From Macrostomum lignano (Eukaryota), in assembly GCA_002269645.1 (NCBI GenBank), contig NIVC01000342.1, positions 124,001-188,000 of the forward strand: DNA of 64,000 bases, written 5' to 3'. This document shows positions 27,365-51,514 of the stretch, piece by piece. A program made the position numbers and the translations under genes. Within the stretch, counting starts at the first letter, position 1, and each line of letters starts with the position of its first letter. A model generated the notes under the pieces. That model made no database searches and had not been told where the DNA came from. It saw nothing but the letters and a program-made list of their open reading frames with translations.

Positions 27365-27400
<36 letters not shown>

Positions 27401-27413: not shown

Positions 27414-27512
<99 letters not shown>

Positions 27513-27545
27513 CACAGACAGTCAGACAGACAGACAGACAGACAC
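27365..27545. repeat. (GACA)n microsatellite abutting the channel A start
   Basis: Ends about 10 nt before ATG 27556. Confidence 0.95.
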
Positions 27546-27555: not shown

Positions 27556-30500
27556 ATGTCCCCTCAATCAGCAGGCATGGCAAACACTGAGAAGCAGAGC
27601 GCCGCAGACGCAAGCGGTACAGCAGAAGCAGAGGCTGGCGGCTTCGGCATCGCCAATTCGTTCCGCGAATTCGCCCAGTACACCACCGCCCACGGCCTGG
27701 GACGCTTCGCCGCCCAGTCGACGGCCTTTGGCCGCACAATCTGGATCGCCTTTCTGCTCGGCACTTATGGCGGTTTCGCTTACCACCTGTTCACCTTGAT
27801 TGACAGGTGAATTCATTTGGGGCAATGAAAATTGGCCGAAGGGTTCACAGCCATGAGGGCCAGCCCAGAGTGTTGACTTGTCTGACCTGACTTAGCTGCA
27901 GGGCGGTCTGAAGACTCGGCGGGGAGGCGAGCGGGTTGTCGTGCAATTCCCCCAAGGCACGGAGAGTGTACATGCCTGACGATTAGAAGATCAAGGCTGC
28001 TGTACACCCTGCGTGAGATCGTGTATGAGTTCATTCCTACGTACAGTATTGGCGGGCTTGCATGTGCTCAGGAGTCAGTAGAAAAGGCACAACTAAGAAG
28101 CATTGACGATGAGTCATCCACTTATCCGTTTGTTCAATTAAACAAATATCAACTAAGAAGCATTAACGATGAGTCATCCACTTTTCCGTTTGTTCAATTA
28201 AACAAATATCAACTAAGAAGCATTCACGATGAGTCATCCACTTTTCCGTTTGATCAGTTAAACAAATCCGTTGACGATGTAGATAATATCAAGATTGCTT
28301 TAACCGTTTGTTCAGTTAAACAAATATCAAGTAGCCCGTGCGTCCGATTTCTGAATTGGCTGAATTCCAATCTACTCACAGATTCACCAGCACGCCGCTG
28401 CTCACAAGCCTGGCCACCTCGCTGCCGTACGAGTTCCCGGACGTGTACATCTGCCCGAAGAATCCGATCTCGATGAGTAAGGCCTACGAACCATTCAAGC
28501 TCAAAGATGACGTGCCGAAGTTGCGCGGACTGAAGAAAGACTGCAACACCACCTGCCAGGCCAGGCTGAGCTACTTCAAGGAATCCGACGTCTACCTGAG
28601 CACGCCAATGTACGCATTCGCTAGAATGGTGTATTCTGTGGAAGCTGCTCTGATGCCCAAGCTCAACAACAAAGGCATCGGTGAGGAAACTCATTCTGAG
28701 GGACAAGTTAATGTTTGAGTGATAAATACTCGAGGCACAGTTGAGGGCGGATTACATGGTGTTTTTAGCACTAATTTTGGCGCTTTGAAGCAAATTTACT
28801 GATTTCAGATAACGGTTCACAAGGTGGGACGGGGGGACAAGATATTGTAATGTCCCCCCGGTAACGAAACCCCTGGGTAAGACTAAAGTGTTAATAAGAT
28901 GCATTGTTTAAGGCCAGTAGCACACTCAGTAAGGGTTCGCAATTATTTGGGACACAAAATGCACAGAAATTGAGTCTTGACCTGCGACTTTTTGTTCATT
29001 GCCTGGTGATGTGAAAATCGTTTACGTATCCGTGTGCGTGGGCATGCTCTAGGTCAGTGGAATGGGAGGCAGTGTTCAAAGCCCTCCTAGCAAAATACGT
29101 AGCCAACTAACAAGGCACTAGTTGAATCTTGATAGTGAAAACGAGTTCTTTAGTTTGCAGAGGGTGCGGGTGGGTCTGTAAGTGCGGTAACTCACGGTAT
29201 TTCTCGACGCCCGTCCCAACATCCTGCGCGGGCGATGACTGGCGGGTCACGTGATCCTGCTGCTGCCCCCAGCCTCTACATTCTGTTGCTCCCCTTACAG
29301 GGCCCATTTAGGCGGGGCCAGGCCCGAACCCGTCGATACGTGGAGACTGCCTGCTTTGCGACGCCGTCTGACGCACCCTGGCCGCTTGACTTTGCTTCTC
29401 TGGGTTGCGTCTCTTGTTGCTGTTGCTGTAAAATCAATATTTAAGCTAGATGCATGACGGTGCATTCATTTGAAGCAATTAGAATGCTTCGAATTTTACA
29501 AGTGCTTTCTCCTAATTAATTCAGGAATCATCCCATGCACTTCATTCTATTCATTACAATGCAAGCATACCGGTACACTACAAAGAAGAAAAGAAGTGCA
29601 GGAGAAAAGCTACTACACCATAATTTCCCACGTTTTGTCTTTCAGCGGGAAACACCAGCGAGTGTCGCTTTACCCTGGACGGAACCGAATACACCGGAGA
29701 CAAGAACTCGGTGCCCGTGTTCGGCAACAGCCTGAGGCTGACACTGCCACCAAGCAATCTGACGCAGCCGAACTACGTCACGGAGCTGCCCTGCATGCCA
29801 TGGAACGAGGCCGCCCGTCTGCTTGCAGAGGCCGGCCTCAAGAACATGTCGGACAAGATTCTGTCCTATAATTTCTCAAATAATGACGCCAGGTGCCGGA
29901 CTCCACCTGGCCTGCCGCTGGAGGAATTCGACAATTTCACCAGTGAGTTTCTGGGGCTGTCTGCTCATGCCAGGAACGCTCGCTCATTCAAAGTTTTTTG
30001 ACTTTGGCATAAAATTCATTGCCCAGATATGAAAGTCTCAGGTTATTAAATGTTATTTCTTGTACTAACCAGAGCCAGAATTGGTAAAATATGCTATTAA
30101 AAGCAGCGGAGAGCGGAGCGGAGTTACTCAGCAAAAAACGTGTCTGACTCTCGCGCCACGACCCCTGGTTCGATTCCCGTGCGCAAACAAATTTATTTGG
30201 TACTTGTGCACGAAAATTGGCCGGCGGGTTTTCATGCGATTTACAGCCGTCAGGGCCAACCCCCAAGGCACAGAGAGCGTACCTGCCTGACGGTTGAAAA
30301 GTCAGAAGCCCGCTGTACACCCTGTGTGAGCGTGCGGATGAGAGACTGCCAAAGCGCTGGTTGTGGGATGATGTCGCCGAAGGCGTTGCGCCAGGGTGCC
30401 TCCAGCCCTGCTGCATCAAATGTAGGTTTACATTTGATGCAGTTGTTGTGAACTCTTGGCCATCCTGTGTTTCGTACACTGTTGAAGACCAGCGCAAAAA

Positions 30501-33500
30501 TGAAATGCGCTTGTTTCGTATCTATAATAACGTTTCTTACTATAGTTGGTTGACTTCGATTCACTGCTATAACACGCTTATATCTGATCGAATGAATTTC
30601 AGCCTACCTGATCAACCTAGACAAGGATCCAATCTGCTATCAGGACAGCGCATCGGACAGATTTTTTGTGAGCTGCTTCGGCGGCCAGATTCCCACTATG
30701 AACGTCGAAAAGTGCACCGAATGCTGCTTCAAAAACAACTTCAAGTACTACGGGTTGCAGTACTATGATTGCTTCTGCAGTAACAGAATTGTGCCTGGCA
30801 ACACGGCAGACTCGAGTAACTGCAAGTACTCGTGTCCCGGACAGGCCGCGGATGCGGATGAAACCTGCGGAGGAGACGGCTTGTACATGAGCGTGAAGCA
30901 GATCCGGCCCACGGGTGAGGGAGCCTTGTCTTGCATATTAAAAGCGGCGCGGTTGCATAATCTCTCGCCTCTGTAGACTCTTTCTCGAGCCCTTCATTTC
31001 GGCACGGTGCCTAAGTTAAGGGCAAGAACGGAAGGCACAGGAGGGAAGGCACAGGAGGTAAGGCACTGAGAGAAGGCACATGAGGGAAGGCACAGGAGGG
31101 AAGGCACAGGAGGTAAGGCACATGAGAGAAGGCACAGGAGGGAAGGCACAGGAGGGAAGGCACAGGAGGGAAGGCACAGGAGGGAAGGCACAGGAGGGAA
31201 GGCACAGGAGGGAAGGCACAGGAGGGACCTCTACCAACTCTACAGTGCCTGCTAATTCCATTCTTCCTAAATTCTATTCCATAAATAAAGTTCCCAAATC
31301 AATGAAGCTGTATTACGTATCTACTACTGTCGTATAATTTTTGCTTATATTATCTAAGAAACAAAGTTTCCCTGGCCCTCTACTTTAATCATAATTGACT
31401 TTCTTTTTTCAGCCGACTTGCCTGTATTCGCGTCCTACGGAGGCTTCCTGGCCGACTATCTGATTGGGCCGTACTGTTTCTACAATGATACGCACAATGG
31501 ACTGGCGCTGTCCTACTGCAACATCCCGTTCTGCTGTATGCGGCATTGCGTTATCTGAGCTTGCTCTAATGAGGGGCCGTAGTCCAGTGGTCTGGCGCAG
31601 CTGCTCTCGTGTGCCAGCGGCCCAGGCTCGATTCCAAGTGCAGTCACAATAATCTGGGACTAAATTGGAATCTCAGCTTGGCTCTGCTCGTGCAATTAAC
31701 GGCCTCGAGGGCCAACCCCCCAAGGCACAGTGAAGTGTACATGCCTAACGATAAATAAAGTTAGGGCCGCTGTACACTCCTGTGTGAGTGTGGGCCTGCG
31801 TACGTATCCGCGCGCTTGTGTGCCTGCTCAGGGGAGTCGGCGGAATGGGCAGTAATGCCTCTCGCCGGTTGTGTGTTGATGTCGCTTAAAGTGCGCCAGG
31901 GTGCACACAACCCCCCGGCCTCTAATAAAAAAAATCATCCCAGTTGCTAAGGTCCTTCAGACTAAAAACAAGTTTCGCTCATATGCTTTCGCCTATCTGC
32001 AAATTTAACTTTCTCATTGCTTCATCCGCAGCCGCCTCGGGAACCTACGACTGCGTGGTGCGCAGCTCCGGCGACGTCGCGGAGAAGCAGTCAGCAAAGT
32101 ACACAGGCAACCTGAATTATACCAACTCCGGTCGGGAGTGCATGGTGTGGGACGACGTGAAGACTGCCATAGCCAAGCGGACGCTTAGCCTGGCAAACTC
32201 AGATTTGATTTCTTGGAATTTTCCATTCCGATGTGAGTTTTTCAGTGCCGTTGTCAAAAAACCAATATAAAAATTTATCAATCATCAATACAACTAAAAT
32301 TGTCATATTTTGCCCAGACTACTCAATCGATCAGATGATCATCTTGACGACTGACTACGCGATAAGCAATCGCACGAACTACTGCAGAGCGGCCCACGTC
32401 CTGTACGATGCCACTTACTACGATGAGACTGGCACGAACCGGGTTGGCTCCAGGTAAGCTCCCCAGCTAATTTTTTTCAATGAAATACCTGTGATAATTA
32501 TTATCCAGCTTGGATTCCTGTACGAGCTACAAATTCAAAAACTCCCCATCAACCCAGCCGAAGCACACTAATCTCGTCGTTGGTTCCCGGATGTTTCTAT
32601 GTTAACGAGGAAGACAGTGAAATTCACTTTGAGACTTGCGCTATCGAATCCTGCGGTGAGGTCGCCAACTGTGTCTAAAAACCTTACTTTGATTACATCT
32701 GCACTAACAAATATGTTTGTTCAACTTTAGTTCAAAAGGTAAATTCAGTCAAAATTTGGAAATACTACACCAGGGGTCAGCAAACTGTTTTGCCTCAATG
32801 AGAGTGGAAAGAAGATGGGATGGAAGATGAGAGATGAGAGAAGAGAGAAGAGAGATTAGAGAAAGGATAGAAGATAATAGAAGAGGAGAGTGGAGAGAGG
32901 AGAGGGTAGAGACATGAGAGTGGAGAGAGGGGAGGGGAGGGAGGGGAGAGGTTAGAGAGAAGAGAGTAGAGAGAGGAGAGAGGAGAGAGGAGAGAGGAGA
33001 GGGGGAGAGAAGGTGAGAGAGGAGGGAAAAGAGAGAGAGGGAGAGAAGAGAAGAGACATCAACCTTGAGCGGGCCGGATTGCTATTTTGAAGTTTCAAAG
33101 GACCGAGGGCCGGATAGAGAGGCTCTGCGGGGTTGCATGTCACCCGCGGGCCGGAGAATGCACCGAGACATTAATTTCTACTCACTCACTTCAGTGGAGA
33201 CCAGTCCCAGCGTCCCTGGCATCGTCAGAAACAACATTGGAACAGCCGAACTGGCTCGCCAGTTTGGTCCCAGCCTCGACGTCAGCTTGATTGACTGCGA
33301 CTTCTACGGCTGGCAGTGCACAGCCAACCATTTTCAGGAGGTCTTACACCCAGAGAGCGGTGTCTGTTATAAGTTCATGAAAGAGCCATTTATTACAGGT
33401 TTGAGCCTGCCAGAACTGAAAGAAGCCAGCCTGGCTGTTCAGCTGTTCACCGACGCCACCGATTCCGACGGCATCGGTCCAGAGCAGGCGCAAGACGCGT

Positions 33501-35759
33501 CGAAGGCGATCTTGAACGAGCTGGGCGATTCAAGCAGAGCAGGCAACCGTGCTTTTGACGTAATGACCTAATCACAGTTATAATATCAAATTAAGCGAAT
33601 ATTATTGTTAGCCAAACTAAGCCGAGAACAAACGCAATAAATGCAGGTGGTCATCGTACCAAACGGCACGTTTCCATGGATATCGCAAGCCTTTGGAGTT
33701 GTCAAGTCTCAAAAGTCGGAATTCAAGGTGCGTCTCGACAGGACAACCCGACTATCAAAGCCATCGCTGGAGTGCAGCAAGGCCGCACCGCCTGTCACGT
33801 ACGTTCTAGACTATTGGAAGCCTGCTGGCCTGCCATCAAATGTGACGTAAGCATTTCGAGCTGTTTCAAGAGATTGATTCCGATGTAATTTTTTAACTTG
33901 TAGCAAAACTTTTTAGGGCCTTGATGGAAACCACCTTTTGGGCTGTTGAAAATGCAGAAAATTGGACTGCTAAGATTGACTTGATGAAGCAACTGGTTAT
34001 TAGCTATAACGGCATGAAGTAAGTGTCGTTGTCTGCGTGTACTTCTGCTGTATCACCCCAACAGTGTAAACTCGCATGGAGCAACTTGGCAACAATATTA
34101 TTTTTAGGAGCTCAACAAAGCAGAAAGTGACGTTCCAGACAAGCACCCAGGAGGACTGCCTCAATGAGTACGTGCTGCGCAGATTCGCCGAAAACTGCCG
34201 CTGTCTGCCGACTTTCCTACCCATCCCTGAGCAGCTATTTGCCAAATATCCCATCTGCTTCAACTCAACAGACATAGAAAATTTGTACAAAACTGACCAA
34301 TGCTTCATCCAACAGAAGAAGAGGGTGAAGACTTACCGAGTTGAAGCTCGGGACCATTGCATGCCGCCTTGCGAGACAAGAAAGTACACGGTCAGCCAGA
34401 ACTCTTTTCCCTGGCCGAACGTTCGGAGGCAGGTGTCGGAGGGTTTCTTAAGAAATCTGGCCAAAACCTACGGCTATCCGAATCGAGTAAAGTCTCTAAG
34501 AGGTCCGGGTGTCATCTATTCGACCTATCTTCGGTACCGGAGTTTGAGCGAAAACATAACTGAACTCATGAACTTCGACTACCAGCTGCTCACGCTGCAG
34601 GACCAGCTGGCCATGGTGTCGGTCTCGTCGGCTCAAATGTTTGGCGAAGACATCCTGGAGGAAGAGGCCTATCCAATTAAGAACTTGCTGGCGGACATGG
34701 GCGGTGAGCGCTTATTTACTTTCCACAGTTTCGCAACACAGTTATAGTACGTAATTTCGCAGATATTGCCTGGATACTAGAGTTTCAGTAACTCTTCTGT
34801 ATATATGTTTCTAATTACGTAGTTTCATAAATCTGATCAATTCGCCTAAAGGAAGTACAAAAAAAATTTGGCCGGAGAGGTCGTTGTGCGATTCACACCG
34901 ATCGTGGCCAACCCCCAAGGGCACAAAGAGAGTACAAGCCTGACGATGTGAAAGTCAGGGCAAGTGCCTGTCGGCGTCAGCGGGATGGGCAGAATTATTG
35001 TACCTTACCTCACCCCTGGTCATGGGACCGTGTCACCAAAGGCGGTGCCCCTGGGTGCCAATCTTGGTTAGAGACAGGGCCTGTGTGCACCCTGGAGCAC
35101 TTAAGCGACATTGTCACAACCCTGGTGAGAGGCATTGCTGCCCATTCCGCCGACTCCCCCGAGCAGGCACACAAACGCGCGGATACGTACACAGTCATAC
35201 GCACAGGCACACACTCACACAGGAGTGTACAGCGGCCCTAACGTTATTCATATCTTTAGGCACCTACACTTCACTGCGCCTTGGGGGGTTGGCCATCAAG
35301 GCCGTTCATTGCACGAGCAGAAATTAATTTGACTGCACTTGGAATCCAGCCAAAACCACTAGACCACCAGGCTATGCCTTTCGCCCATGGGTGCTAACAG
35401 CCCTCCTGAGATTATTATTAGATTATTAGCTGAGAAAACAGCGATAAAAGTATATCCTAGCACCTGCATTCAACGGCTCGAACACAGGCATCCTGGGCCT
35501 CTGGTGCGGCGTCTCCATTCTGACCGTGTGCGAGCTGATCGAGCTGTCAGTCTACGTAATTCTAACGCTGAAGCAGTTCTGCGCTGGGGACAAACAGCGG
35601 CGCGGCAGGTCTGACAGGGGCGCCAGCGGACACGACGGCCCCGGGGCTGCGTACGCCGTACCGGAACTGCCAACAGCGCCGCCATCGATGAAAGACGATG
35701 CCAACAATGGCGGTGAAGTTGCTGATGAAGACGGTGGAGTTGAAACCAGCCGCTTTTGA
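27556..35759 (+). CDS. DEG/ENaC (amiloride-sensitive Na channel family) subunit A with kringle(WSC)-kringle insertion, about 1042-1049 aa, 12 exons
   Basis: Exons 27556(or 27577)-27806, 28382-28680, 29646-29942, 30603-30914, 31413-31535, 32032-32232, 32318-32453, 32558-32655, 33195-33559, 33647-33846, 34108-34703, 35488-35759. All junctions are GT-AG and phase-consistent; total from 27577 is 3129 nt. Motifs: pre-TM1 TTAHG, TM1, [24 protein letters not shown], Cys-rich thumb (NCRCLP, CMPPC), TM2 [19 protein letters not shown]. Confidence 0.93.
28090..28268. repeat. 60-bp tandem repeat x3
   Basis: Three consecutive 60-nt rows are nearly identical. Confidence 0.9.
28770..28875 (-). mobile_element. 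Remnant end of a MITE related to 50306-50941
   Basis: Minus strand begins CAGGGG, then GGGGGGACA..TGTCCCCCC hairpin, CCCACCTT and CTTCA..GCGCCAAAAT in the same order as the left end of the 50306 element. Confidence 0.45.
29200..29400 (+). mobile_element. 3' fragment of the same LINE family
   Basis: [16 protein letters not shown] peptide; nt similarity to the reverse complement of 40870-40960. Confidence 0.65.
30100..30400 (+). mobile_element. SINE A-related subfamily copy
   Basis: B box CTGGTTCGATTCCCGTGCGCAAAC, then GGCCAACCCCCAAGGCACAG...GCTGTACACCC. Related fragments at about 27945-28020, 34890-34965, 48945-48975, 60750-60790, 61450-61530, 61930-62020. Confidence 0.7.
30603..30914 (+). 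other. WSC domain exon of channel A (phase 1-1)
   Basis: ICYQD...[10 protein letters not shown]...[13 protein letters not shown]...CKYSCPG...TCGG..MSV matches the WSC pattern GCYxD..CxxxC..YAGL..CxC..CxxxCxG..CGG..SV. Confidence 0.88.
31030..31228. repeat. 14-bp minisatellite (GGGAAGGCACAGGA)n
   Basis: Direct reading. Confidence 0.9.
31573..31932 (+). mobile_element. SINE family A, full length (intron 5 of channel A)
   Basis: Collinear and highly similar to 62109-62477 from the tRNA head to the poly-A tail. Confidence 0.85.
32032..32655 (+). other. Kringle domain 2 of channel A (3 exons)
   Basis: YDC...[18 protein letters not shown]...NYCRA...PGCFY...ETCAIESC: six Cys with the YxG, SGxxCxxW and NYCR kringle hallmarks. 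Confidence 0.85.
32771..33165 (-). mobile_element. hAT-Charlie-like MITE carrying a GA/CT microsatellite
   Basis: CAGGGGTCAGCAAACT end; shares CAATCCGGCCCGCTCAAGGTT and CCGGCCCTCGGTCCTTTGAAACTTCA with 39638-39900 and 19535-20110. Confidence 0.6.
35085..35350 (-). mobile_element. SINE family A, truncated, reverse strand
   Basis: The reverse complement matches the SINE A body (GATTCCAAGTGCAGTC...GGCCAACCCCCCAAGG...GTCGCTTAAGTGC). Confidence 0.8.
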
Positions 35760-36409
35760 GTTGTAGTAAGACAAATATTTAAGCATAGAGAATAACAAAA
35801 ATGGCTGTTGTGTTTTTAATAACAGACAGCCTTGAGAAAATATTGAATAATTCTAAACTACGAAAGGTATATATACGAAGTCAAATTATTGCAACCTCTG
35901 ATATTTTGTTCTCTAATATTTTTAATGCACACGAACGTTTTTATGAGCTTTTCAAAGCTTTTGTTTATTTAAATGATATTGATATTGCCTTTGTTTGTCG
36001 ATATTTTTTCTGTGATTACTATTTTTCAACTATTTATTGTTAATTGTTAAATTATTGTTAAAAATCGGTTTGAAAGTGTCTTTTATCGTTCTATAAACTA
36101 TATCGTTATAGTTCGCTAAAGATAGTGTATAAAAAAGTTTGCTTATTGAAACAATGTAGGAACTCCTTCCACAGAATTTATATACCCTGTTTTAGTTAAT
36201 TCCCATTTTTTTTAGAATTTTTCAATCTACTGTAATATCAGACGATTTTAAAAAACTATTAAAAATATAACTGTCAGACCGGATCTCCCTTAATTGCTCC
36301 CACCAGAAACACCGGTAAAAATTGAGGGTCGATAGCCTGTAAATTAATCTAAGCGTATATGGCCTGCGATGTGTCAACGGAATTAAAGCGTAGGCATAGG
36401 GGTACGGAT

Positions 36410-39900: not shown

Positions 39901-40362
39901 TCATAAATTCCTGTTCAAAAGCCGATTTTTGTGTTCTGACTGATTTCTCTACTCGTTCATGCTGATAGTTTTCGCATTATTTCGCTATTCATTTTAGCTT
40001 TATTGCCAATCTCATCCTATCTTAAAATTATCTATCCTAGAGAAATATATTCTCTAGGGTCTAGTTGTTTATTCAAGTTCAAGGACTACTAGACTATAAC
40101 GAAGTGTTCTTAGTGGTCCTTGTTCGAGTTATTGTACCCTAGCATTTAATAAGCTGTTCGCAGATAGGGCTTTTAAGTTTTCACTTCTCGCAAGCGCACA
40201 TGCAATCATACAATGTATAATTCACTTTTGGCAGACTAACCCGTCTGATTGGTTTGAAGAGACCTGTCAATCGGATTGGTCGTGGCTCACGGAACAAGAG
40301 CGGAACTTGCTGCTGAAATTAATCTCAATCTCTTCTTTGACTAGCTCGTCTACTTGGCTTTG

Positions 40363-40376
40363 GTTTCCATGACAAC
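40363..40376. promoter_or_regulatory. RFX X-box upstream of channel B
   Basis: GTTTCCATGACAAC matches the 14-bp X-box consensus (GTTxCCATGxCAAC). It lies about 150 nt 5' of the inferred ATG, near two reverse CCAAT boxes (GATTGG at about 40247 and 40275). Confidence 0.5.
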
Positions 40377-40528
40377 TTAACCACGTCTATACCTGTAGTC
40401 TGTTCCTCTCTCTGCCTCCAACGGTAATTGTCTCGATTAAACCTGACTTTTATAACCAGCCATCGAGCGCGTTCGCAGTTGTGGTCTGAACAGGGGCAAA
40501 AGCAGCAGGGCTCTGCTCAACAGCGCAC

Positions 40529-43500
40529 ATGGCTTTTCATGAGAAGGTAGGCAAAATGCATTTCACTTATGTTTTATATTGAATAGCTTGGCTACTCCAT
40601 GGTTTTTGTTCGGCTACTGAAAGCTTCTATATGACTCAGAGCCTTTTGTATTTTACTGTCAATAACTGATTGTGAAAATCTTTATGCCAAAGTTGCTTCA
40701 TTTGGCAGTCAGCTAAAAAAATTGCCGCGGTAATTCGCCTTTGGTATCATCAATACGGGAGAAAACAAAAAAAAACAACAACAAAGTACGCAGCCCTGCA
40801 TGTAAGGTCACAGTTAGAGCAGGGCGTGTCAGATGGCGCGCCGCAGAGCCTGAGAGCAGACGAAGTCGGGCGCCCGGCGTCGCATAGGAGGCAGTCCACT
40901 TATCAACGGGTTCGGGCCTGACCCCGCCTGAACGGCCCTAGCAAGGTGAGCAGCAGAACGTCCTGAACAGGTTGGGGACAGTAGCCCTTGGCCCGGATCA
41001 CGTAGCCTGCCGGTTGAAGTCGCCGCCGGCGCAGGATGATGGACGGGCGCTGCAGCTTGCCCCGATCGTACAGGGCCTCGGTCCCGACGCTCTCAACAGC
41101 TTGAAAGGCCGCACGGAGAGCAGCCCTGAGTGCGCCGAGTCCAGCTGCCGCTCCAGCGTAGCCGTCAGCGTCCACGTCTCGGCGTTGTATAGCAGGACGG
41201 TTTCGACCACCGCCTGCCACAGCCGAGCCCTCTGGCGGTCGGGCAGCGCTTCGGACTGGAGGTTAACATCGGCCCACGGTTTAGGCAGGCTGGACTCCCA
41301 GAGTAGAGTAGCTGGTCGAACTATTTGGATTGTCTTCCTCCTGGGAACGAATGGGAGAAAAAACGGCTTATCGTTCCCACTGTATAAGTAGATTAGATAT
41401 TTGCGTAATATAATTTCCTCAGACTGTTCAGCTGGCAAAGAAACTCTCGAGACAGAATGTGTACAAAGAATTTTAGTGGCTTTGTCAAGCAGCTTGTAGA
41501 GGCCATTATCACTGCTAATACACCCTTGAATAATGGACCTAACATTCTACTAGACAAAAGGTAGGATATTTTTTTACACTCTGACTAAATATTGACCAAG
41601 CAAACAGAGCTTCCACCAGTGCACTAACTGCTTTCTGTGGGCTGGGTTTCTTAAAAGAAAATGAGTTCCTTTTGAAATCTTAGCAGCAATTTAGGCCGCT
41701 ATTCAGGCAGTCGTCAAGAGTCGTCAGGCTCGATTCCAAGTGCAGTCACATTAATTTGGGGCTGAATTGGAATCTCGGCTTGGCTCTGCTCGTGCAATTA
41801 ACGGCCTTGAGGGCCAAACTCCAAGGCACAGTAAATGTACATGTTTATCGATAAATAAAAGTTATGGCCGATGTACACTCCTGTGTGAGTGTGTGCCTGT
41901 GCGTATGATTGCCAATGTATCCGCGCGCTTGTGTGCCTGCTTAGGGGAGTCGGTGGAATGGGCAGCAATGCCTCTCGCCGGTTGTGTGACAATGTCGCTT
42001 AAAGTGCGCCAGGGTGCTCACAGCCTCTTGCCTTTGATAGAATAAAAATACACAGATACGCTCGTAGTTCAGTAAAGGCAATGCTCAACTTTCAATAGCA
42101 CTGCCAATCAAACTGTTGGGATTCAACTTGGCAGGTTTCGGTCGACGAGGTTCAATCATTTTCTACAGATGATGCCGCCCAAACTCCTGCTGAGGGGAGT
42201 TCAGCTGCGAGGGGAGGCGCTGCCATCCTGTCGGCTTCCTTCTGGAATTTTTTCAGCTACACATCCGCCCACGGTTTAAGCAGGCTGGAGTCTCAGAGTA
42301 GAGCCGCTGGTCGAACTATCTGGATTGTCTTCCTCCTGGGAGCATATGGCGGCTTCTGCTATCACCTTTACACTCTGATTGATAGGTGCGGATTTAGACT
42401 TAATTTTAAATTTATTTACTAAATTTGCACCGAAAAGTACTTACTCTCGAACGATCTACACCCAGATACTCGAGCACGCCACTGCTGACGAGTCTGACCA
42501 CATCGTTGCCCTACCAGTTCCCGGACGTGTACATTTGCCCGGCGAACATCCTGTCAATGAGCAAGCTCAGCAGCAGGTTTAGCGCTACTTGGGACAGACC
42601 GAGGCTGCGTGGACTAAAAAAAGAGTGCAATCTGACTTGCCAGATTCATTTGAGCAAATTCGACATCACCAGGGGAGAAGACGAAGTGTCGCTGAGCTCG
42701 CCAACTCTGGCCCTGGACGATGCGGCCAACACTGCCGAACAGTCTATCATCGCCTGGTTTCAGCGGAAAGCCTTCGGTAGAGTGAAATGCATTGATCGTG
42801 CAATCACAGAATAAGTATTTTGACTCTAGGCCAAGCCAACTATAATATCGATTTGCACAACTCTTCGAGCGAACAAATTTTCGGTCCAAATCCTGTGAAA
42901 GTCATAAATTTACAACGGAAATAACATTTTAATGGATTAAAAAATGTTATGGATTGCAAATCTAAGCCTTGAGAATTCGACTCAGATTCCTTAATTATGT
43001 TCATCCATCCTCGGAAAAGTATTTTAAATGATTGAAAGAATTTCGCTTCGAATGGAGCTTTATGAGTATATTCTGTAGCACAGACCGGGGGGGGGGTCAA
43101 AGTCTCAGGGAGGAACGGAAGTCGGAAAAGTGGCTCTAGAACCCTACACTTTAGCGTGCTAAGGTTTGGTAACCTTTCGCATCGATGCTCATACCATTTC
43201 CAGATCAGTTTTCCACTTGCCGTTTCACCATCGGCGGAGGCGAGTACAGTGGAAACAGAAGCGCGGTGCCTCTGTACACCGACAGCGTTCAAGTGAGGCC
43301 GCAATCGAGCAGTGCGCCCGCACAGCCGTACACGTTCGAGACCCCGTGTCTGGCCTGGAACCGGGCTGCGGACAGCCTTAAATCCAAGGGCTTGAACTCC
43401 TTGGCTGATAGGATCCTGGCGCTAAACTACTCTGATGGCGACGCGCGGTGTCGCCAAGCGAAAGGACTAACAATGAAAGATATCAATCCGTATGCCACAG

Positions 43501-46500
43501 GTACGATATTAAAAACTCACAGTTTAATTTGCTAGAGTCTATTCATGACTAGCCATTATTGGGTAAAATAGTAAAAAATGAGATGGTGTAGCAATGCTAA
43601 TTGCACTGAATCTATACGTGACGAGGTACACTCAATGGAACAGGCCTGGTTCGCTCTCACTAGGGGGGTTGTAGCCTAGAGGTTAGAGCGTCGGACTCAC
43701 GACTTGAAGATCGGTCGGGGGTTCGATTCCTGCTCCCACTGGAGCAATTTGTGTCCTTGAGCAAGACACTTAACTCTGAATTGCTTTAGTTCACATAGCT
43801 GTAAAATGGGTGCCAGCATTAGCTGGGGTAATTGATGGTGTGGGTGGCGACCCCCCAGTCCTCGTACGCAGCCTTCAGATGCGCCGCGCAATAGCTGCGG
43901 CTGAGCTGTCGGTTGCACATCTGGCCCGATTGGGGCAGGTGTAATAAATAATTATTATGATCGCTCGCAAATTTTGTAAAATCTATAGGAGATTTTCGAA
44001 GCTGTATTCTAAGAGGTATCTTGATGACCGCGTTTAATTTTTTTTACAAATTTGTAAATACAGATTTTTGCTTATTATTTTCATACTTGATCCCATTAAG
44101 TGCCACTGAAATTGGAGTCCGGCTGCTTCAGAGAGAGTGAGAGTAGAAAGCACTTCACCTACAGCTGTTTCGCCCTGACCATCACGCTGCTGACAGTCGA
44201 CGTGTGCTTGGAGTGCTGTTACAACCGAAACTTCACCCACATGGCACTCAGAAGGTCATCCTGCTATTGCGGTAGCGAGCCCGTGTCTGAAGGAATCGAT
44301 GACGACTTCTGCGATTCGCCCTGTCCGGGAGACTTCAACCAATGGTGCGGGGGAGAGGCCTCAGTCAGCGTCTACAAAGTTAGAAACGTTGGTATGAACA
44401 AATCTATTTCAAGTATTTATTCTCGATCGATATTTTGATCAATTTTAGTTTGACTCTAATAACCTTTGGTAAGTTTTTGCCACTTCAGTCAGCTTTGAGA
44501 GTTTGAGTATTTTCAACTGTTTTACTTGGGTTCAGCTGCACCGATGAACAAGGAATCTTTAACTATCGATTAGGTGACACTCTTACCCCCTATCTGCCAA
44601 TGCGTCTGCATCGACCCACCTCCAGTCATCTGCACCAACCCCCCGCCGTCTGCACCTACCCCCAGCCGTCTGCATCGACCCCCCAGCCCCCCCAACCGTC
44701 TGCACCAACCCCCCAGCCGTCTGCACCTACCCCCCAGCCGTCTGCCCCAGCCGTCTGCACCAACCCCCAACCATCTGCCCCCCCAGCCATCTACGCCAAC
44801 CCCCAGCCGTCTGCACCAACCCCCAACCATCTGCCCCCCCAGCCATCTACGCCAACCCCCAGCCGTCTGCACCAACCCCTCAGCTGTCTGCCCCCCAGCC
44901 ATCTACGCCAACCCCCAGCCGTCTGCACCAACCCCTCAGCCGTCTGCCCCCAGCCATCTACGCCAACCCCCCAGCCGTCTGCACCAACCCCTCAGCTGTC
45001 TGCCCCCCAGCCATCTACGCCAACCCCCAGCCGTCTGCACCAACCCCTCAGCCGTCTGCCCCCAGCCATCTACGCCAACCCCCAGCCGTCTGCACCAACC
45101 CCTCAGCCGTCTGCCCCCCAGCCATCTACGCCAACCCCCCAGCCGTCTGCACCAACCCCCAACCATCTGCCCCCCCAGCCATCTACGCCAACCCCCAGCC
45201 GTCTACACCAACCCCTCAGCTGTCTGCCCCCCAGCCATCTACGCCAACCCCCCAGCCGTCTGCACCAACCCCTCAGCCGTCTGCCCACCAGCCATCTACG
45301 CCAACCCCCCAGCCGTCTGCGCAACCCTCACCAGCTGCATCCATCTCCCCATTTCTTCTGCCCTGGCCCGTTGCGTGCCAAATTATGATTGTTTGCGTTT
45401 TTATGCACTGTTTACCCCCTTGTCTCTAAGAGCTTAGTCCCTGCGTTTTACCGACAAATACTAACAGGCGTTGGGTAACCTTTGTAGCCAATCTTTGGTG
45501 AGTATACCCGACCATGGGAATTCCCCGCAATGCTCCATTATAGCAAAAAACAGGATAAGGTGATTCTTGTTTTGAATAACTGATTCCGTTGTTCTGATTA
45601 TCAGTTGAAGCACTTAAATCAGACTTTTCATACGGCTTAATAAAATTCCTTTCTAAAACTAACTTGTAATTCTAATTTGAACCCAGCCTGGGAGGACACG
45701 AAAATCTTCGTGCCGTACGGAAGCAAGATGACTCGCTTCCTGGAGGGACCGATCTGCTTCTATGAGGACCCAGCACGTGGCCTCTCCGTATCGCCTTGCA
45801 ATATTCCGTTCTGTCGTGAGTAGCCTTGTCTTGCCTCGATTTAAACAGAAAGTACAATATCAAGGTCCACTAGTGCTAGTTCGTTGTACTACTAATCGCT
45901 CGATAGACTATTAATCTACAGTTAACCTCCAAAAACACATTATTCAATTTTTTATTGTCTACGGTCTGGTCTCATATATCGTGACTCAAAAAGGAGCCAA
46001 TTATATGATATATCAAAGCTGAAAACGAGGCCAATTATATGAACCCTATTCCCTCTGTATGAACCAAACAGGTTGCAACAAATTGCAACAAATTGGGAGC
46101 GTTGAATCAAACAAAAAACCGTGCATTTTAAGTCGTAAAACATAGTTTAACATCTCGAATGAAAACTGGGAGTAAGTAGGAATAGGAATAAAGACAATCG
46201 GAATAGTCATAGTCATAGCAGTTGGGTCATAGCAACAAGCCAGCAAAAAATCATTCCCAAGTAATGATGACAGTCTCTCCATTAGCGCATAAGTTAACCC
46301 GAAGGTCCTCAAACGGGATTTTCACAGTGTTAGTCTCACCGTTGACCGCCATGCGCATCCTCTTCTTTGCGGAAACACTGATCCTCTCAGAAAGGAGATT
46401 CAATGTAGGCTCAACGGACGCCACGGGTCCTCCTGCGTGCAGTGCGCAGGTCATACGCCAAGTCTTCCTCCAAGTTTAAGTTGAAGTTGCAACCCTCACT

Positions 46501-49500
46501 GATTCTATTTGTTTGTCTGTCTCTGTTTCTCACTGTCACTTCTCACTGTCTCTACTCAAAATTTTACTGTCTATGGTAAATATAGGGGGACTGCGCCCCC
46601 CCCATACCCCCGCTTACATGTATGTGGGGGTTCCGATATCTGTAGATTAGGTACAATCTTTGTCTGTTCTTTTGGTGTTTTTTTGGTGCTCTTCAGGTTT
46701 TTTAACCTTATAAATATTGACCATAGATACTCTAGAATTCAATAATTTTTCTATGGTTAAAAACGTCACTAATACCAATTATGGCGGTGAAATTTCCCAG
46801 CTGCGCCTCCAGAGTACGACTGTACAGCGAGCGGCGCTAGCGACGACACAGAGGTTCTGGAAGCGGCCCGCTACAGCGGTTGCCTGAATGTCACGGCCTC
46901 CGGTCGAGCCTGCCTGATCTGGGCGGATACAAAACGGCGGGTGGAGAACGGCTCGATGCGACTACCGGAGATTCACCACGACTGGGACTCGATGTTTTCC
47001 AGTTGGTTACATTCTGATCTGCAATTTCCCTTTCAGAATCGAAATATGGATTGCAATGCAAGAAATAGAAATATTACTCTGGCTACCACAATTTGACTGC
47101 CAAAAATTCAGGTTACACTACGTTTCTAATTTTGATTAAGGTTTGGGATATGTTTGTCACTAAAGTGACTTCCAGCAGCTCCCAAAGACTGCTCTCAAGA
47201 TTCTTAGAATTAAAAATGTAAAGCGGAACATCCTGTATGAATTTAACCTACTTTGAAAGTTCATTGGGAGCGATCGAATCCGTTTGAGGAGTAGGCTAAT
47301 TTCTTCTTCACAAATAGCAGAAGTACCACTTCAAAGCATTATTTAACTGGGTCTGCAACCTCAAGTTCAGTGTAAACAATTTTGAGTCAGTGAATTGAAG
47401 TTTATTCAAGTCAAAATTTCTGATGTTGAATCAGCAAACAAAAATTCTGTTTCAGCAAACAAAGATTCACTCGATGTCACGGGTAAACGATGGTTTTTAT
47501 TTGTAGTACATTTCCATTAACGGTATACGTCGGCCAAACGTCGGTGGGATGTATTTCGAGTACGAGCTACTCTACGTCACTGCGTGCTCACTTGCAAACT
47601 TTCAGACAAATCAATAGTGCAACTGATTCTGCAAACTCCGGACTACGAACTCAGCAATGAGTCCAATTACTGCAGGGCTGTTCACGCCATGGCGGACACC
47701 TTGTATCAGTTGGCGCCAGGCAACAATGGCTCAAATGCTTACGTGTTCGTGATGATTTACCTTTCAGTTAGCTTATTAGCTAATAGGAGCCGAACCACAC
47801 CTCCCAGTCCTTTCGATAGGAGCCGAACCACACCTCCCAGTCCTTTCGATAGGAGCCAAACCACACCTCCCCATGCAGTCCTTTCGATAGGAGCCGAACC
47901 ACACTTCCCAGTCCTTTCGATAGGAGCCGAACCACACTTCCCAGTCCTTTCGATAGGAGCCGAACCACACCTCCCAGTCCTTTCGATAGGAGCCGAACCA
48001 CACTTCCCAGTCCTTTCGATAGGAGCCGAACCACACCTCCCCATGCAGTCCTTTCGATAGGAGCCGAACCACACCTCCTATACAGTCCTTTCGATAGGAC
48101 CGAACCACACCCCCAGTCCTTTCGATAGGAGCCAAACCACACCTCCCAGTCCTTTCGATAGGAGCCAAACCACGCCTCCCAGTCCTTTATATAAAGCCAA
48201 ATCTCGCCATTTATTCAATATATCTGATATTACTTTGTCCCCAATGGTAAGTGTGAAATCCAAACTCGACTATTTCAGTCGCGAAACAGTGGCCAAATCT
48301 ACAGAACCGGGCTGCTTCTATTTAAACGAAGCCGAAAATACCATCCTATTTGAAGCTTGTACGGTGAAGCCGTGCTGTGAGTGAGCTGCATTTATTCATT
48401 GATGCAATAGAAATAGCACATTGGTCCTTCAATTAGCAACTTGACTTTGGCTTCATTTGGGTGAATTCATCGATCCTATAAAACCCAACCGACCGGCTCC
48501 CAGACAAGGCCAGTCCAGCCGTGACGGGATCGGTGCGCGCTCGAGTTGGTAGCGCTCCGCTGGCCCGACAGTTCGGTGTCGACCTGGCCGACGGCCTGAT
48601 CAAGTGCGAGTTTAACGGCCAGTCGTGCGGTCCAGCGAATTTCCAGTCGGTACTGCAGCCAGAACTGGGCGTCTGCCAGCGACTGTTGAAGGAGCCACTG
48701 CTACGTGGCCTCAGCTCAAGTGAAGTGGCCGATGTTATCTTTCAAGTGCAACTGTTCAGCGATGCTACTGATTCGTTTGGCGGAGTTTACCGCCAGGCCA
48801 ACAAGTTGGCCAATGTTGTGCTAGGCGGTGGTGGCAGCGGAAGTTCTGCGATAAAGGTGGCTTTCGCTTCTTGATAAGTAGAATGAAAAACATGACCATT
48901 GCTTGCGCCAAACCTAAAGACAACACGAAATCGATACGCTTGACAAGTCAGGGCCGTTGTACACCCTTTGCGAATGCTTGGACTACTTGGATTGCGTCCT
49001 GGTTGTTCACGTCTCCCTGAATTTGATTAATATATACCATCCGCTCCCTCACACTGTTAGGTGATCGCGGTCCCGGAAGGCACATTCCCTTGGGCAGCGA
49101 ACGCTCTGGAGGTCATGCCTGCGCAGCACACCAAGCTGAAACTGCGATACGATAGAACTGTCAGGTACTCAAAGCCACCAGTCAGAGAGTGCCTTCGTGA
49201 AGTTATGCCAGTAACGTATATGCTTGACCCCTGGACACCTGCCAGCCTCAGCGACGAAGTACTGTGAGTACCCAGTCCAAGTGGGTCTAGATTCTGGACA
49301 CTGGTGCGCCCCACTTACAAATATTGGATACACTAATGCACTAACGCATCCCTCCTGCATTGTCAATTATCAACCATGCCGGATTTTACATCAGGCACTT
49401 TTTTAAATCAATACGTACCCGAACTCCATCAGCGACCGGATGGACTCGCTGTTTACCGGACCAATTGAGGCCTCGAATTGGACTATCAAGACAGATATTA

Positions 49501-51514
49501 TAAGGGACCTATTTCAGAGCTACAGCAAATTCAGGTAAATCTGTTTGAATCGCTTGTGCAATTGCATGATAAAGATGTTTCAATAAGAACAAAAAACTGC
49601 AGGGGACCAATGCGAAGGAAGATGAAATTCAAAGCAAGCACTCTGCAGGACTGCTTCAACGAGTTTGTACTACATAGATTCGCCGAAAATTGCAGCTGCC
49701 TGCCAACATTTCTGCCCATCCCCGAGCAGCTGTACGCCAAATACCCGATTTGCTTTAACACTACTGACATCGAGAACTTGTACGCCACTGACCAGTGCTA
49801 TATTCGCCAGCTAAATCTGCTGAAAAGCTACCGTAGCGAGGCCCGAAGCCGCTGCAAGCTGCCTTGCGAGACCCTCGAGTTCAAAGTCAGCCAAGTGGCC
49901 AACACGTGGCCGAACATTCGTCGCGACACTCTTTTAAAATTCCTGAGCGGCCTGGCCAGCAGGTTCGGCTACCCCAACTCCGTCAGCCGATTCCGCGGCC
50001 CAGTGAGCCTGTACTCCGCCTACCTAAGCGCTCTGGCCCTGACTCGAAACTTTCGCGGAACAGCCAAGCTGACAGCTAATCTGACCAGATTCGACTACGA
50101 GATGAGCGTCCTGCAGGACCGCCTGGCCATGGTGTCGGTGTCCGCGTCCGAGCCCCTAGGCGAAGAGAAAATCGAAGAGGAGGCCTACCCGGTCAAGAAC
50201 TTGCTGGCCGATATGGGAGGTTTGTGAATTGGGAGCAAGCACAGTTTACCTATGACGGACACTGTACTGAAAGAAAATGACTGCTTATAAAACCATGCGC
50301 ACAAGCAGGCGCGTCACCACCGGGCAGAGACAGGGAGGGCATGTCCCCCCAGTAAAAGCTATGGGGGGACATGCCAATACTTTCCCCCCCCCACCCCACC
50401 TTTTGACTCGTGGTAATCAATAATTTTTCTTCAGGGCGCCAAAATATAGCGCCTACGGCGCTAAAATAAGTGCCTGCGGCGCCAAAATGTGCCTGCGGCG
50501 CCAAAATAGTGCCTACGGCGCTAAAATGAGTGCCTGCGGCGCCAAAATGGTGCCTGCGGCGCTAAAATGGTGCCTACGGCGCTAAAATGTGCCTGCGGCG
50601 CCAAAATGGTGCCTACGGCGCTAAAATGTGCCTGCGGCGCCAAAATAGTGCCTACGGCGCTAAAATGTGCCTGCGGCGCCAAAATGGTGCCTATGGCGCT
50701 AAAATGTGCCTGCGGCGCCAAAATAGTGCCTACGGCGCTAAAATGTGCCTGCGGCGCCAAAATGGTGCCTATGGCATTAAAATGAGTGCCTGCAACGCCA
50801 AAATGAGTACCTGCGGCGCCAAAATTATGGCTGACAACACGATTCTCGAAATAATGGAAATGCAGGAATTTAGTCATGTACATGTACATGTTGAATTCTT
50901 GGCTTTGTCCCCCCACCATAAAATCAATGGCGACGCCCCTGCGCACAAGTGATAATTTCGACAGTTACCAAGGCCATCCGCTGACGTCACTGCTAGTGCC
51001 AGGGGTTCATTGAAGCTCCTAAATCTAAACCTAAATTTAAATCTAAAGTTGGTCCGTTTCACAGCTAGCAAGGTCCGTTTCGCAAACCCAGAGAACGCAT
51101 GCGCACAAACATACCCAGACAGGCACGCACACTAATTCTGTGTGTGTGTGTAGGTCCAAATTCGGTGCCCGCAAACCCCACATTAATGAGGGCAACACCG
51201 CAGAATCGAACTGGAGCGAGGATCGATCTGGCCATCTCGGGCACCACATGCCCATATCGACTTGGTCGATTTGATCAATTTTCAACCGAACGCCCTATTT
51301 GTCAGGCATCCTGGGCCTGTGGTGCGGCATCTCTCTGCTGACTGTGTGCGAGCTGCTCGAACTGTGGGTTCACGTCGCCCTGCGGATGCACCAGCTGTGC
51401 TCGGCCGCTGTTCACACTGGCGATGATTCTAGAGCCAGTGGCGAGCGTCGCGACGACAGCGAGACTAGCGCGGGGAACAAGCGCGGCAAGTCGACGACTA
51501 GCAAACCAATGTAG
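40529..51514 (+). CDS. DEG/ENaC subunit B, tandem paralog of A with the same kringle(WSC)-kringle insertion, about 1037 aa
   Basis: Exons [40529-40546 inferred], 42135-42385, 42466-42776, 43204-43500, 44101-44391, 45687-45815, 46801-47001, 47606-about 47741, 48279-48376, 48504-48856, 49061-49263, 49603-50219, 51306-51514. Intron positions and phases match gene A; three exons have identical lengths (297, 201, 98 nt). Motifs [48 protein letters not shown]. The first exon and the donor near 47741 are uncertain. Confidence 0.88.
40830..41262 (-). mobile_element. 3' fragment of a non-LTR retrotransposon (RTE-like RT C-terminus), frameshifted
   Basis: Minus-strand peptides LPDRQRARLWQAVVETVLLYNAETWTLTATLERQLDSAHSGLL and [46 protein letters not shown]. 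LLYxxETWT is typical of the region C-terminal to LINE RT. Clade is an inference. Confidence 0.7.
41266..41346 (+). pseudogene. Orphan duplicate fragment of the channel HG/TM1 exon
   Basis: Encodes TSAHGLGRLDSQSRVAGRTIWIVFLLG; about 90 percent nt identity to 42261-42341 by eye. Truncated on both sides and abutting a LINE fragment. Confidence 0.8.
41724..42047 (+). mobile_element. SINE family A, 5'-truncated
   Basis: Starts at CAGGCTCGATTCCAAGTGCAGTCAC and is collinear with 62109-62477 to the AATAAAA tail. Confidence 0.82.
43663..43960 (+). mobile_element. tRNA-derived CORE-like SINE (family B)
   Basis: A box TAGCCTAGAGG, B box GGTTCGATTCC, then TGTGTCCTTGAGCAAGACACTTAAC...CTGTAAAATGGG resembling the CORE domain; AT-rich tail. 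Confidence 0.7.
44590..45330. repeat. C-rich compound minisatellite (CCAACCCCCAGCCGTCTGCA / CCATCTACG subunits)
   Basis: Direct reading; explains the Pro-rich ORFs 44574 and 44600. Confidence 0.9.
46801..48376 (+). other. Kringle domain 2 of channel B
   Basis: YDC...RYSGCLNVTASGRACLIW...SNYCRAV...PGCFY...EACTVKPC. Confidence 0.82.
47785..48185. repeat. 33-bp minisatellite (GTCCTTTCGATAGGAGCCGAACCACACCTCCCA)n
   Basis: About 12 copies in the intron within kringle 2 of channel B. Confidence 0.92.
50306..50941. mobile_element. Non-autonomous hAT-type DNA transposon (MITE) with internal 39-bp tandem repeat
   Basis: TIRs CAGGCGCGTCACCA / TGGCGACGCCCCTG (12 of 14 match); perfect 8-bp TSD CGCACAAG at 50298-50305 and 50942-50949. 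Confidence 0.85.

Follow-up and report, generated by a model that had tools for sequence, protein, structure and literature searches.

A DEG/ENaC subunit subfamily in Macrostomum lignano with a WSC and kringle-like module in the extracellular finger

Two tandem channel genes

We analysed a 64,000-nucleotide stretch of the genome of the flatworm Macrostomum lignano (hereafter the window; positions 124,001 to 188,000 of contig NIVC01000342.1, forward strand), in which two genes lying side by side on the + strand, here called gene 1 and gene 2, are tandem paralogues of a subfamily of DEG/ENaC (ASC) channel subunits. Gene models were built by joining stop-free segments of the + strand at GT-AG sites, with a consistent phase required across each junction, and were refined against database proteins (Table 1). 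Gene 1 comprises 13 coding exons, all with GT-AG junctions, that form a single open frame of 1076 amino acids (aa) from an ATG at 27577 to a stop at 35757-35759. Gene 2 has the same 13 exons, intron phases that equal those of gene 1 at every junction, and a stop at 51512-51514; the two proteins are 45% identical across their full length. An earlier description of this DNA (the first-pass annotation) had put the total at about 1040 aa, against 500-700 aa, by its own figure, for typical DEG/ENaC members. Both proteins are indeed far larger than is typical, but the estimate falls 30-40 residues short of our gene 1 and gene 2 models, which would be explained by a missed 102-nucleotide exon; this exon (exon 11 in both genes) is supported in gene 1 by the database proteins P0001 and P0002.

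Membership in the DEG/ENaC family, as proposed in the first-pass annotation, is borne out by the Pfam ASC profile (PF00858, cut-off 23.6 bits), which scores 176.2 bits in gene 1 (E=1.6e-51) and 153.5 bits in gene 2 (E=1.3e-44). The match is divided into two stretches, profile positions 1-85 before a cysteine-rich module and 136-455 after it; as positions 86-135 are replaced, the module substitutes for the variable stretch between the FPxVTxC and CxFxGxxC motifs, which agrees with the earlier placement of an insert of approximately 390 aa in the finger. Along the gene 1 protein, the HG motif (TAHGL, aa 37-41) is followed by the first transmembrane segment (TM1, approximately aa 50-75), FPDVYIC (aa 95-101), the module (approximately aa 180-566), a 10-residue motif of the CxFxGxxC type (aa 598-607) and a GxCY motif (GVCYKF, aa 621-626). 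The second transmembrane segment (TM2) is the sole Kyte-Doolittle peak above 1.6 (approximately aa 981-1015) and includes a 17-residue stretch at aa 990-1006; its filter, G-V-S in gene 1 and G-I-S in gene 2, lies inside GLWCG(V/I)S(I/L)LTVCEL and aligns with the TM2 of FaNaC and ASIC. The HG motif, FPDVYIC and the G-x-S filter are kept in both window genes, and HG and FPDVY in all four aligned paralogues. By profile comparison, the nearest solved channels are FaNaC1 (8on7; E=5.5e-13), Aplysia FaNaC (7yvb), ASIC5/BASIC and ASIC1.

The two proteins thus resemble other DEG/ENaC subunits in having two transmembrane segments, an HG motif, FPxVxxC after TM1, a cysteine-rich ectodomain and a G-x-S filter in TM2, although their sequence similarity to characterised channels is low, and the gene 1 finger holds a 389-aa three-domain module where a typical member has a few helices. 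The module is extracellular by virtue of its position between TM1 and TM2, and the distribution of N-x-S/T sequons is in line with this (14 in the gene 1 protein, 8 of them inside the module). In this family the finger is the variable gating and regulatory region, reported to hold the inhibitory tracts of ENaC, the peptide site of FaNaC and the acidic pocket of ASIC.

Gene 1 is represented in public protein collections. PAA85180.1 (P0001), described as "hypothetical protein BOX15_Mlig034226g1, partial" and encoded on this same contig in GCA_002269645.1 (Mlig_3_7), matches the gene 1 product at 788 of 788 comparable residues (100% identity), while the full-length PAA47210.1 (P0162) differs at 7 of 1076 ungapped positions (approximately 99% identity) and is a second locus or haplotype of gene 1. 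The Mlig_3_7 annotation was derived from RNA-seq-guided transcripts (StringTie, TACO and a de novo transcriptome) with open reading frames called by TransDecoder (PMC5730564), so that the two proteins document, at the level of transcripts, module exons spliced in with the TM1 exons on one side and the ASC exons on the other and no break in the frame; the gene 1 transcript carries every module exon in frame. The transcript includes a 5′ exon that ends at 26010 and is spliced to an acceptor AG at 27570-27571, and the first ATG inside exon 1 of the spliced mRNA is that at 27577 (MANTEK...), which is most likely the translation start. The ATG at 27556, from which the first-pass annotation had begun gene 1, is intronic, as it lies upstream of this acceptor. 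The PAA85180.1 transcript also keeps the intron after exon 11 (34018-34108), with a stop just beyond the exon, giving an 802-aa product that would lack TM2 and the C-terminal part of the ectodomain; this may be unprocessed RNA or a true truncated isoform.

The beginning of gene 2 is less clear. Its frame is open from 42099 and exon 1 is readable from 42168, but exon 1 contains no in-frame ATG: an ATGATG at 42169-42174, directly after a good exon-1 acceptor and homologous in position to the gene 1 start, is out of frame by +1, and the frame that it opens ends in a stop at 42276. No counterpart of the 5′ exon of gene 1 was found upstream, no gene 2 protein was found in the protein collections searched, and no gene is called in the part of the GenBank record that we examined, which covers only the 5′ end of gene 2. 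An upstream coding exon that escaped detection, a recently acquired frameshift or a one-base error in the assembly, which is PacBio-based (PMC5730564), may each account for this pattern, and gene 2 may accordingly be a pseudogene or be mis-assembled at its start. The claim that both genes have an unbroken frame consequently stands for the whole of gene 1 and, in gene 2, for the part from the HG motif on. Exon 1 of gene 2 has a partial duplicate approximately 1 kb upstream, probably a fragment of a dead exon; a - strand open reading frame that overlaps it (40998-41438) has no Pfam match.

The WSC and kringle-like module

In gene 1, the module consists of 389 aa with 22 cysteines, encoded by six exons (exons 3-8; 1167 nucleotides, or 389 codons) between flanking phase-1 junctions. 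Its layout is nested: exon 3 encodes Cys1-Cys3 of a first domain, exon 4 a WSC domain, exon 5 Cys4-Cys6 of the first domain, and exons 6-8 a second domain. A divergent kringle-like domain, interrupted in its Cys3-Cys4 loop by the WSC domain, comes first, and a second kringle-like domain, whose loops are enlarged, completes the module. This exon structure, together with alignments of 'healed' versions of the first domain, from which the WSC domain had been excised, upholds the kringle(WSC)-kringle nesting described in the first-pass annotation.

The identity of the WSC domain, which had also been called earlier, is straightforward, with Pfam WSC (PF01822, cut-off 27.8 bits) scoring 40.6 bits in gene 1 and 36.3 bits in gene 2 over profile positions 3-82 of 82, and with ten cysteines of the WSC exon invariant across the paralogues. 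When a profile of the whole module was compared with the PDB, the best match was Kremen 1 (E=1.6e-9), followed by yeast Wsc1 (E=1.5e-7). Kremen 1 is thus the best solved relative of the module, in agreement with the comparison drawn in the first-pass annotation.

Several lines of evidence link the remaining two domains to kringles, in which three disulphides (1-6, 2-4 and 3-5) hold a triple-loop fold. Both domains have six invariant cysteines, in kringle order and in kringle-type contexts (Y-x-G...C-x-x-W...[FY]-C-R...P-[WY]-C-[FY]...C-x-[IV]-x-x-C), in all paralogues, and their Cys5-Cys6 (5) and Cys4-Cys5 (14-15) spacings are near canonical kringle values. Kringle is the sole Pfam family that matches the kringle-like segments at E<=0.002, doing so in four of five domain-2 segments and in two of four healed domain-1 segments, where the match (profile 18-79) runs across the healed junction. 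A domain-2 profile built from seven sequences returned kringles as 58 of the 60 PDB chains listed, aligned in two short stretches, with tPA kringle 2 (E=1.7e-5) and ROR1 (E=1.8e-5) as the best single-kringle chains, and all 17 chains matched by the healed domain-1 profile were kringles, at marginal values (E=0.04-0.8). Alignment of the two domains to each other with hhalign gave a probability of 88.5% (E=2.7e-6) with Cys2-Cys6 in register, and on this basis we regard them as mutually homologous. A UniProt fragment equal to exons 6-8 bears the automatic name 'Kringle domain-containing protein'.

Other results argue against an unqualified kringle assignment. Pfam Kringle (PF00051) scores of 15.4-22 bits lie below the gathering score of 34.3, and no match was obtained in full-length gene 2, in two of the four healed domain-1 segments or in one of the five domain-2 segments. 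The loops are non-canonical: Cys3 and Cys4 are separated by 141 aa in domain 1, where the interval holds the WSC domain, and by 35 aa in domain 2, which is approximately 140 aa long as compared with approximately 80 aa for a canonical kringle. The PROSITE-type kringle spacing, [FY]-C-[RH]-[NS]-x(7,8)-[WY]-C, is not kept, and the residue following C-R is T or A rather than N or S. Predicted structures are of low confidence, both for the module (AlphaFold2 with a 6-sequence alignment; mean predicted local distance difference test score, pLDDT, 51.7; predicted template-modelling score, pTM, 0.47) and for a full-length monomer (P0162, 4-sequence alignment; pLDDT 34.6, pTM 0.25), and a Foldseek search of the low-confidence module model against the PDB returned nothing at E<=0.001, with Kremen and Wsc1 as the top weak matches. 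The 'kringle' of the first-pass annotation is therefore retained in part: the six-cysteine framework and the almost exclusively kringle PDB matches favour it, while the Pfam scores of 15-22 bits against 34.3, from the profile check which that annotation had itself proposed, do not. Because the profile scores are sub-threshold, the loops non-canonical and the models of low confidence, both domains are best called, from their sequences, divergent kringle-like domains with greatly enlarged loops.

Conservation, distribution and genomic surroundings

Between gene 1 and gene 2, synonymous sites are saturated (proportion of synonymous differences, pS, 0.6-0.9), and we give pS beside the proportion of non-synonymous differences, pN, rather than dN/dS. 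In the module, pN is 0.41 and pS 0.78, and the non-synonymous proportion is far lower than the synonymous one in every exon; all 22 module cysteines are invariant across four paralogues. These patterns speak against a chance arrangement and indicate that purifying selection has maintained the module ever since the paralogues diverged. Identity between gene 1 and gene 2 is 39% in the module and 51% in the channel core, with exon 12 and TM2 among the most constrained parts.

The boundaries of the module are also informative about its origin. As exons 3-8 amount to 1167 nucleotides between phase-1 junctions, the module could be deleted or skipped in frame, with a DEG/ENaC of ordinary size as the product of skipping, and as it is bounded by phase-1 introns while the WSC exon is itself phase 1-1, it has the signature of exon shuffling. 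It probably arose through shuffling of phase 1-1 modules into an intron of the finger before the subfamily expanded. No module-skipping isoform was seen among the database entries; P0152-P0154, P0166 and P0168 were considered as candidates and rejected, being fragments or frame-shifted predictions.

One may ask whether the fusion is itself an artefact of annotation or assembly, in which the cysteine-rich exons come from a separate nested gene or a chimeric transcript. The assembly of M. lignano contains many repeats and much redundancy, its transcriptional units may hold several genes (PMC5730564), and several database entries of the family are fragmentary or frame-shifted. The same continuous open reading frame is nevertheless present in two independent gene 1 loci or haplotypes (P0001 and P0162), the unannotated gene 2 has the same set of 13 exons with the same intron phases, and the domain order recurs in no fewer than four additional paralogues, complete or nearly so, whose identity to gene 1 is 30-35%. 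Within the module exons there is neither a signal peptide nor a separate start or stop, and the frame is kept at all junctions. Skipping of these exons, or their assignment to a separate nested transcript, had been raised in the first-pass annotation as an outcome that would overturn its proposal; the RNA-seq-derived proteins carry them in frame. Given the independent paralogues, we consider an artefactual fusion to be essentially excluded.

To survey its distribution, a profile of the module was searched with HMMER against 1.84 billion cluster representatives, in which clustering at 50% identity would hide close orthologues from sister species. Full-length or multi-domain matches were found in P0001, P0002, P0003, P0005, P0007, P0009, P0061 and P0075, all from M. 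lignano and, where long enough, all DEG/ENaC subunits; the remaining top matches covered the WSC part only. The species has at least 6-8 paralogous loci of this subfamily, with mutual identities of 30-45%. We found no potential donor, that is, a protein with the kringle(WSC)kringle arrangement but no ASC domain, as all eight checked matches that extended past the WSC part were plain multi-WSC proteins. Word-index searches with full-length gene 1, the family alignment and the C-terminal half of the ASC region returned only M. lignano proteins; these searches are of low sensitivity and say little about other phyla, and they did not provide a sister group without the module, but they would rank sister-species orthologues first and returned none. 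The whole module is thus seemingly known only from DEG/ENaC paralogues of one species so far. One member located outside the window, P0061 (UniProt A0A1I8HMR1), lacks both halves of kringle-like domain 1 as annotated while keeping the WSC domain and domain 2; this may reflect faulty gene prediction on an older assembly, or a module that naturally varies in this way.

In the literature searched, no publication was found that couples an ENaC/degenerin channel with kringle or WSC domains in this architecture, which fits the earlier statement that no DEG/ENaC with these domains had been described. Two papers on DEG/ENaC phylogeny that include M. lignano do not mention kringle or WSC domains, and the M. 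lignano channels tested in oocytes in that literature are other genes (Mlig049925.g2, Mlig051885.g1 and Mlig041003.g1). The sequences of the family are already public in GenBank and UniProt as an uncharacterised 'WSC domain-containing protein', and the novelty is the description of the architecture, not the sequence data.

Table 1 Coordinates of the two channel genes and of associated exons, numbered from the first letter of the window.
Feature	Position	Strand	Description
Gene 1 5′ exon	25974..26010	+	Start of exon uncertain; donor G|GTGAGC at 26010/26011; encodes the P0001 N-terminus RNFWQIGSPAAI; spliced to 27572
Gene 1 exon 1	27572..27806	+	ATG 27577, cytoplasmic N-terminus, HG motif 27685-27699, TM1; Pfam ASC profile 1-85
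Gene 1 exon 2	28382..28680	+	Post-TM1 strand, FPDVYIC 28434-28454, N-terminal part of finger; phase 1 end
Gene 1 exon 3	29646..29942	+	N-terminal half of kringle-like domain 1: Cys1 CRFT, Cys2 CMPW, Cys3 RCRTPPG; phase 1-1
Gene 1 exon 4	30603..30914	+	WSC, single 312-nucleotide phase 1-1 exon between Cys3 and Cys4 of kringle-like domain 1; Pfam 40.6 bits
Gene 1 exon 5	31413..31535	+	C-terminal half of kringle-like domain 1, Cys4-Cys6 (GPYCFY...SYCNIPFC)
Gene 1 exon 6	32032..32232	+	N-terminal part of kringle-like domain 2 (YDC, YTG, CMVW); Pfam Kringle 22 bits, E=2e-4, sub-threshold
Gene 1 exon 7	32318..32453	+	Middle of kringle-like domain 2 (NYCRAA), enlarged Cys3-Cys4 loop
Gene 1 exon 8	32558..32655	+	C-terminal part of kringle-like domain 2 (PGCFY...ETCAIESC); phase 1 end
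Gene 1 exon 9	33195..33559	+	ASC ectodomain resumes; 10-residue motif 33290-33319, GVCYKF 33359-33376; ASC profile from 136
Gene 1 exon 10	33647..33846	+	ASC ectodomain
Gene 1 exon 11	33917..34018	+	ASC ectodomain, 102 nucleotides
Gene 1 exon 12	34108..34703	+	ASC ectodomain, cysteine-rich region ("thumb" of the first-pass annotation); most conserved exon, 59% identity between gene 1 and gene 2
Gene 1 exon 13	35488..35759	+	TM2 with G-V-S filter 35496-35546, cytoplasmic tail, stop 35757-35759
Partial duplicate of gene 2 exon 1	41266..41354	+	88.8% identity over 89 bp; HG motif and start of TM1; frame breaks after 'LLGT'
Gene 2 exon 1 (readable part)	42168..42385	+	HG motif 42264-42278, TM1
Gene 2 exon 2	42466..42776	+	FPDVYIC 42518-42538, N-terminal part of finger
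Gene 2 exon 3	43204..43500	+	N-terminal half of kringle-like domain 1
Gene 2 exon 4	44101..44391	+	WSC, single phase 1-1 exon; Pfam WSC 36.3 bits, cut-off 27.8
Gene 2 exon 5	45687..45815	+	C-terminal half of kringle-like domain 1
Gene 2 exon 6	46813..47001	+	N-terminal part of kringle-like domain 2; Pfam Kringle 21.9 bits, E=2.2e-4, sub-threshold
Gene 2 exon 7	47606..47744	+	Middle of kringle-like domain 2 (NYCRAV)
Gene 2 exon 8	48279..48376	+	C-terminal part of kringle-like domain 2
Gene 2 exon 9	48504..48856	+	ASC ectodomain resumes (IKCEFNGQSC, GVCQRL)
Gene 2 exon 10	49061..49263	+	ASC ectodomain
Gene 2 exon 11	49433..49534	+	102 nucleotides, counterpart of gene 1 exon 11
Gene 2 exon 12	49603..50219	+	ASC ectodomain, counterpart of gene 1 exon 12
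Gene 2 exon 13	51306..51514	+	TM2 with G-I-S filter 51314-51364, tail, stop 51512-51514

Micro- and minisatellites abound in the window as a whole. A (TATTC)n microsatellite of approximately 300 copies with 98% match (36409-37907) lies between gene 1 and gene 2, where the G+C fraction of the 2-kb bin drops to 0.235, and minisatellites are found in introns or just upstream of exon 1 at 26101-26932 (23-nucleotide unit, 36 copies), 27368-27544 ((AGAC)n) and 44622-45327 (56-nucleotide unit, 12.7 copies), with others at 47783-48188 (33-nucleotide unit, 12 copies) and 50435-50825 (39-nucleotide unit, 10 copies). These intronic and upstream repeats generate long spurious open reading frames on both strands and mislead naive splice-site searches. 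Upstream of the channel genes, two long open segments on the + strand (8993-12276) contain cadherin repeats (Pfam Cadherin, E=4.9e-28 and 2.8e-43) and belong to a cadherin- or protocadherin-type gene. Downstream, a gene region on the - strand (54524-59757) includes a segment with a DUF4550 domain (58021-59757; E=7.8e-26) and a 523-aa open segment with a poly-threonine run and no Pfam match (54524-56092).

Possible roles of the module and known systems

The explanation that we favour, with a probability of roughly 0.5, is that these genes encode a DEG/ENaC subfamily whose finger module would serve as a cis-linked binding or tether unit that modulates gating. By analogy with other family members, the subunits would form trimeric cation channels, each with three WSC and six kringle-like domains exposed at the top or periphery of the ectodomain. 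The module would bind an extracellular macromolecule in cis, and the roles of its constituent domains elsewhere make a glycan or glycoprotein of mucus or matrix the likeliest ligand: kringles are protein-binding domains, and WSC domains attach to or sense carbohydrate-rich matrices, as exemplified by Wsc1, Kremen and plasminogen. Occupancy of the module, or a pull on it, would be relayed to the gate through the finger, given that the finger is reported to be the sensing and regulatory region in ENaC, FaNaC and ASIC, and the channel would then either be modulated by a macromolecule or act in mechanosensation through a tether to the matrix. We are more doubtful of a bolder version of this proposal, in which these proteins would be the first of the DEG/ENaC channels to incorporate a receptor for macromolecules and in which glycan or glycoprotein binding, or tension on the module, would directly gate the pore. 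The new class of receptor-channel put forward in the first-pass annotation, and the gating modes suggested there, are likewise proposals.

This interpretation must be weighed against several points. In addition to the sub-threshold Kringle scores, non-canonical loops and low-confidence models set out above, gene 2 has no demonstrable start codon or annotation, and WSC and kringle domains elsewhere also play purely structural or scaffolding roles. It is possible, and in our assessment nearly as likely as a module that modulates gating, that the module is purely a device for anchoring, localisation or assembly, through the glycocalyx, mucus, basal lamina or clustering of subunits, in a channel gated conventionally by peptide or pH or constitutively active. 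Multi-WSC adhesive and carbohydrate-associated proteins make up the bulk of the WSC matches, the module evolves faster than the core, and the core is closest to peptide-gated FaNaC channels, all of which would suit an anchoring role; the region of the ectodomain that houses the module is nevertheless the one linked to gating in studied family members, and the module's 22 of 22 conserved cysteines and an architecture kept in at least six paralogues are less readily accommodated.

Two further scenarios appear less probable. The proteins may be non-conducting receptor or adhesion molecules built on a DEG/ENaC scaffold, an unlikely reading that draws on the divergence of the ASC core, for which the best PDB E-value is 5.5e-13 and most chains are matched at the TM2 region alone. 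It also draws on precedent, as DEG/ENaCs with accessory domains, the C. elegans EGAS channels, gave no currents in oocytes (PMC10424705), a result that also counts against the gating-modulating reading in that channel activity may be hard to show. Against this, both window genes retain the HG motif, FPDVYIC and, in a well-conserved TM2, a G-x-S filter, every aligned paralogue retains HG and FPDVY, and exon 12 and TM2 are among the most constrained parts, all of which points to an intact channel core. We regard as very unlikely that the module is an auto-inhibitory plug removed by proteolysis, in the manner of the ENaC GRIP tracts. It does occupy the finger, where the protease-sensitive tracts of ENaC are reported to lie, and kringles are typical of protease zymogens and protease binders, with plasminogen, prothrombin, tPA and HGF among the PDB matches of domain 2; however, no furin-type R-x-[KR]-R site is present in the ectodomain of the four family members checked (gene 1, P0002, P0003 and P0151), which also makes the proteolytic release suggested in the first-pass annotation unlikely, and a conserved, disulphide-rich module of 389 aa is far more elaborate than an inhibitory peptide requires.

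The finger is the site at which DEG/ENaC channels have diversified toward protons, peptides, proteases and force, and how members of the family could be gated by extracellular tethers or large ligands is still debated. In this context, the subfamily would show that the DEG/ENaC scaffold tolerates domain-sized inserts in the finger and would provide a clean example of exon shuffling, with a WSC module nested inside a kringle-like one; if the receptor reading is true, it would also be a natural fusion of receptor and channel in one polypeptide. As the module can be removed or swapped in frame and transgenesis is established in M. lignano (PMC5730564), its proposed role is directly testable, and were direct gating by a macromolecule or by tension to hold, the subfamily would offer a genetically tractable tethered or macromolecule-gated DEG/ENaC.

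Parallels with known systems are partial. EGAS ('EGF plus ASC') of C. elegans is a precedent for a DEG/ENaC with an additional domain of extracellular type, but the domain there is EGF, and there is no sign of a common origin with the M. lignano subfamily. Kremen 1/2 (5fws, 5fww), co-receptors in the Dickkopf/LRP6 system, are the only solved family in which, as in the module, kringle and WSC domains occur together; in Kremen, however, the domains are arranged in tandem as kringle-WSC-CUB on a protein with a single transmembrane segment, whereas here the WSC domain is nested, a second kringle-like domain follows, no CUB domain is found by Pfam in gene 1 or gene 2, and the whole is inserted in a channel subunit with two transmembrane segments. 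The similarity between module and Kremen is mostly due to the WSC domain. The yeast cell-wall stress sensor Wsc1 (7pz2) and polycystin-1 are membrane proteins that bear a WSC domain and have been implicated in mechanosensation; neither is a DEG/ENaC channel, and the likeness, limited to one domain, is a lead rather than evidence of mechanosensing. A parallel in position is with the GRIP domain of ENaC and the regulatory domains of the nematode degenerins MEC-4 and MEC-10, which are lineage-specific inserts in the same finger region that regulate gating. Whereas the ENaC inserts are released at furin sites, the four M. lignano ectodomains checked have no such site, and whereas the inserts of ENaC and the degenerins are family-specific sequences, that of M. 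lignano consists of shuffled, independently folding modules.

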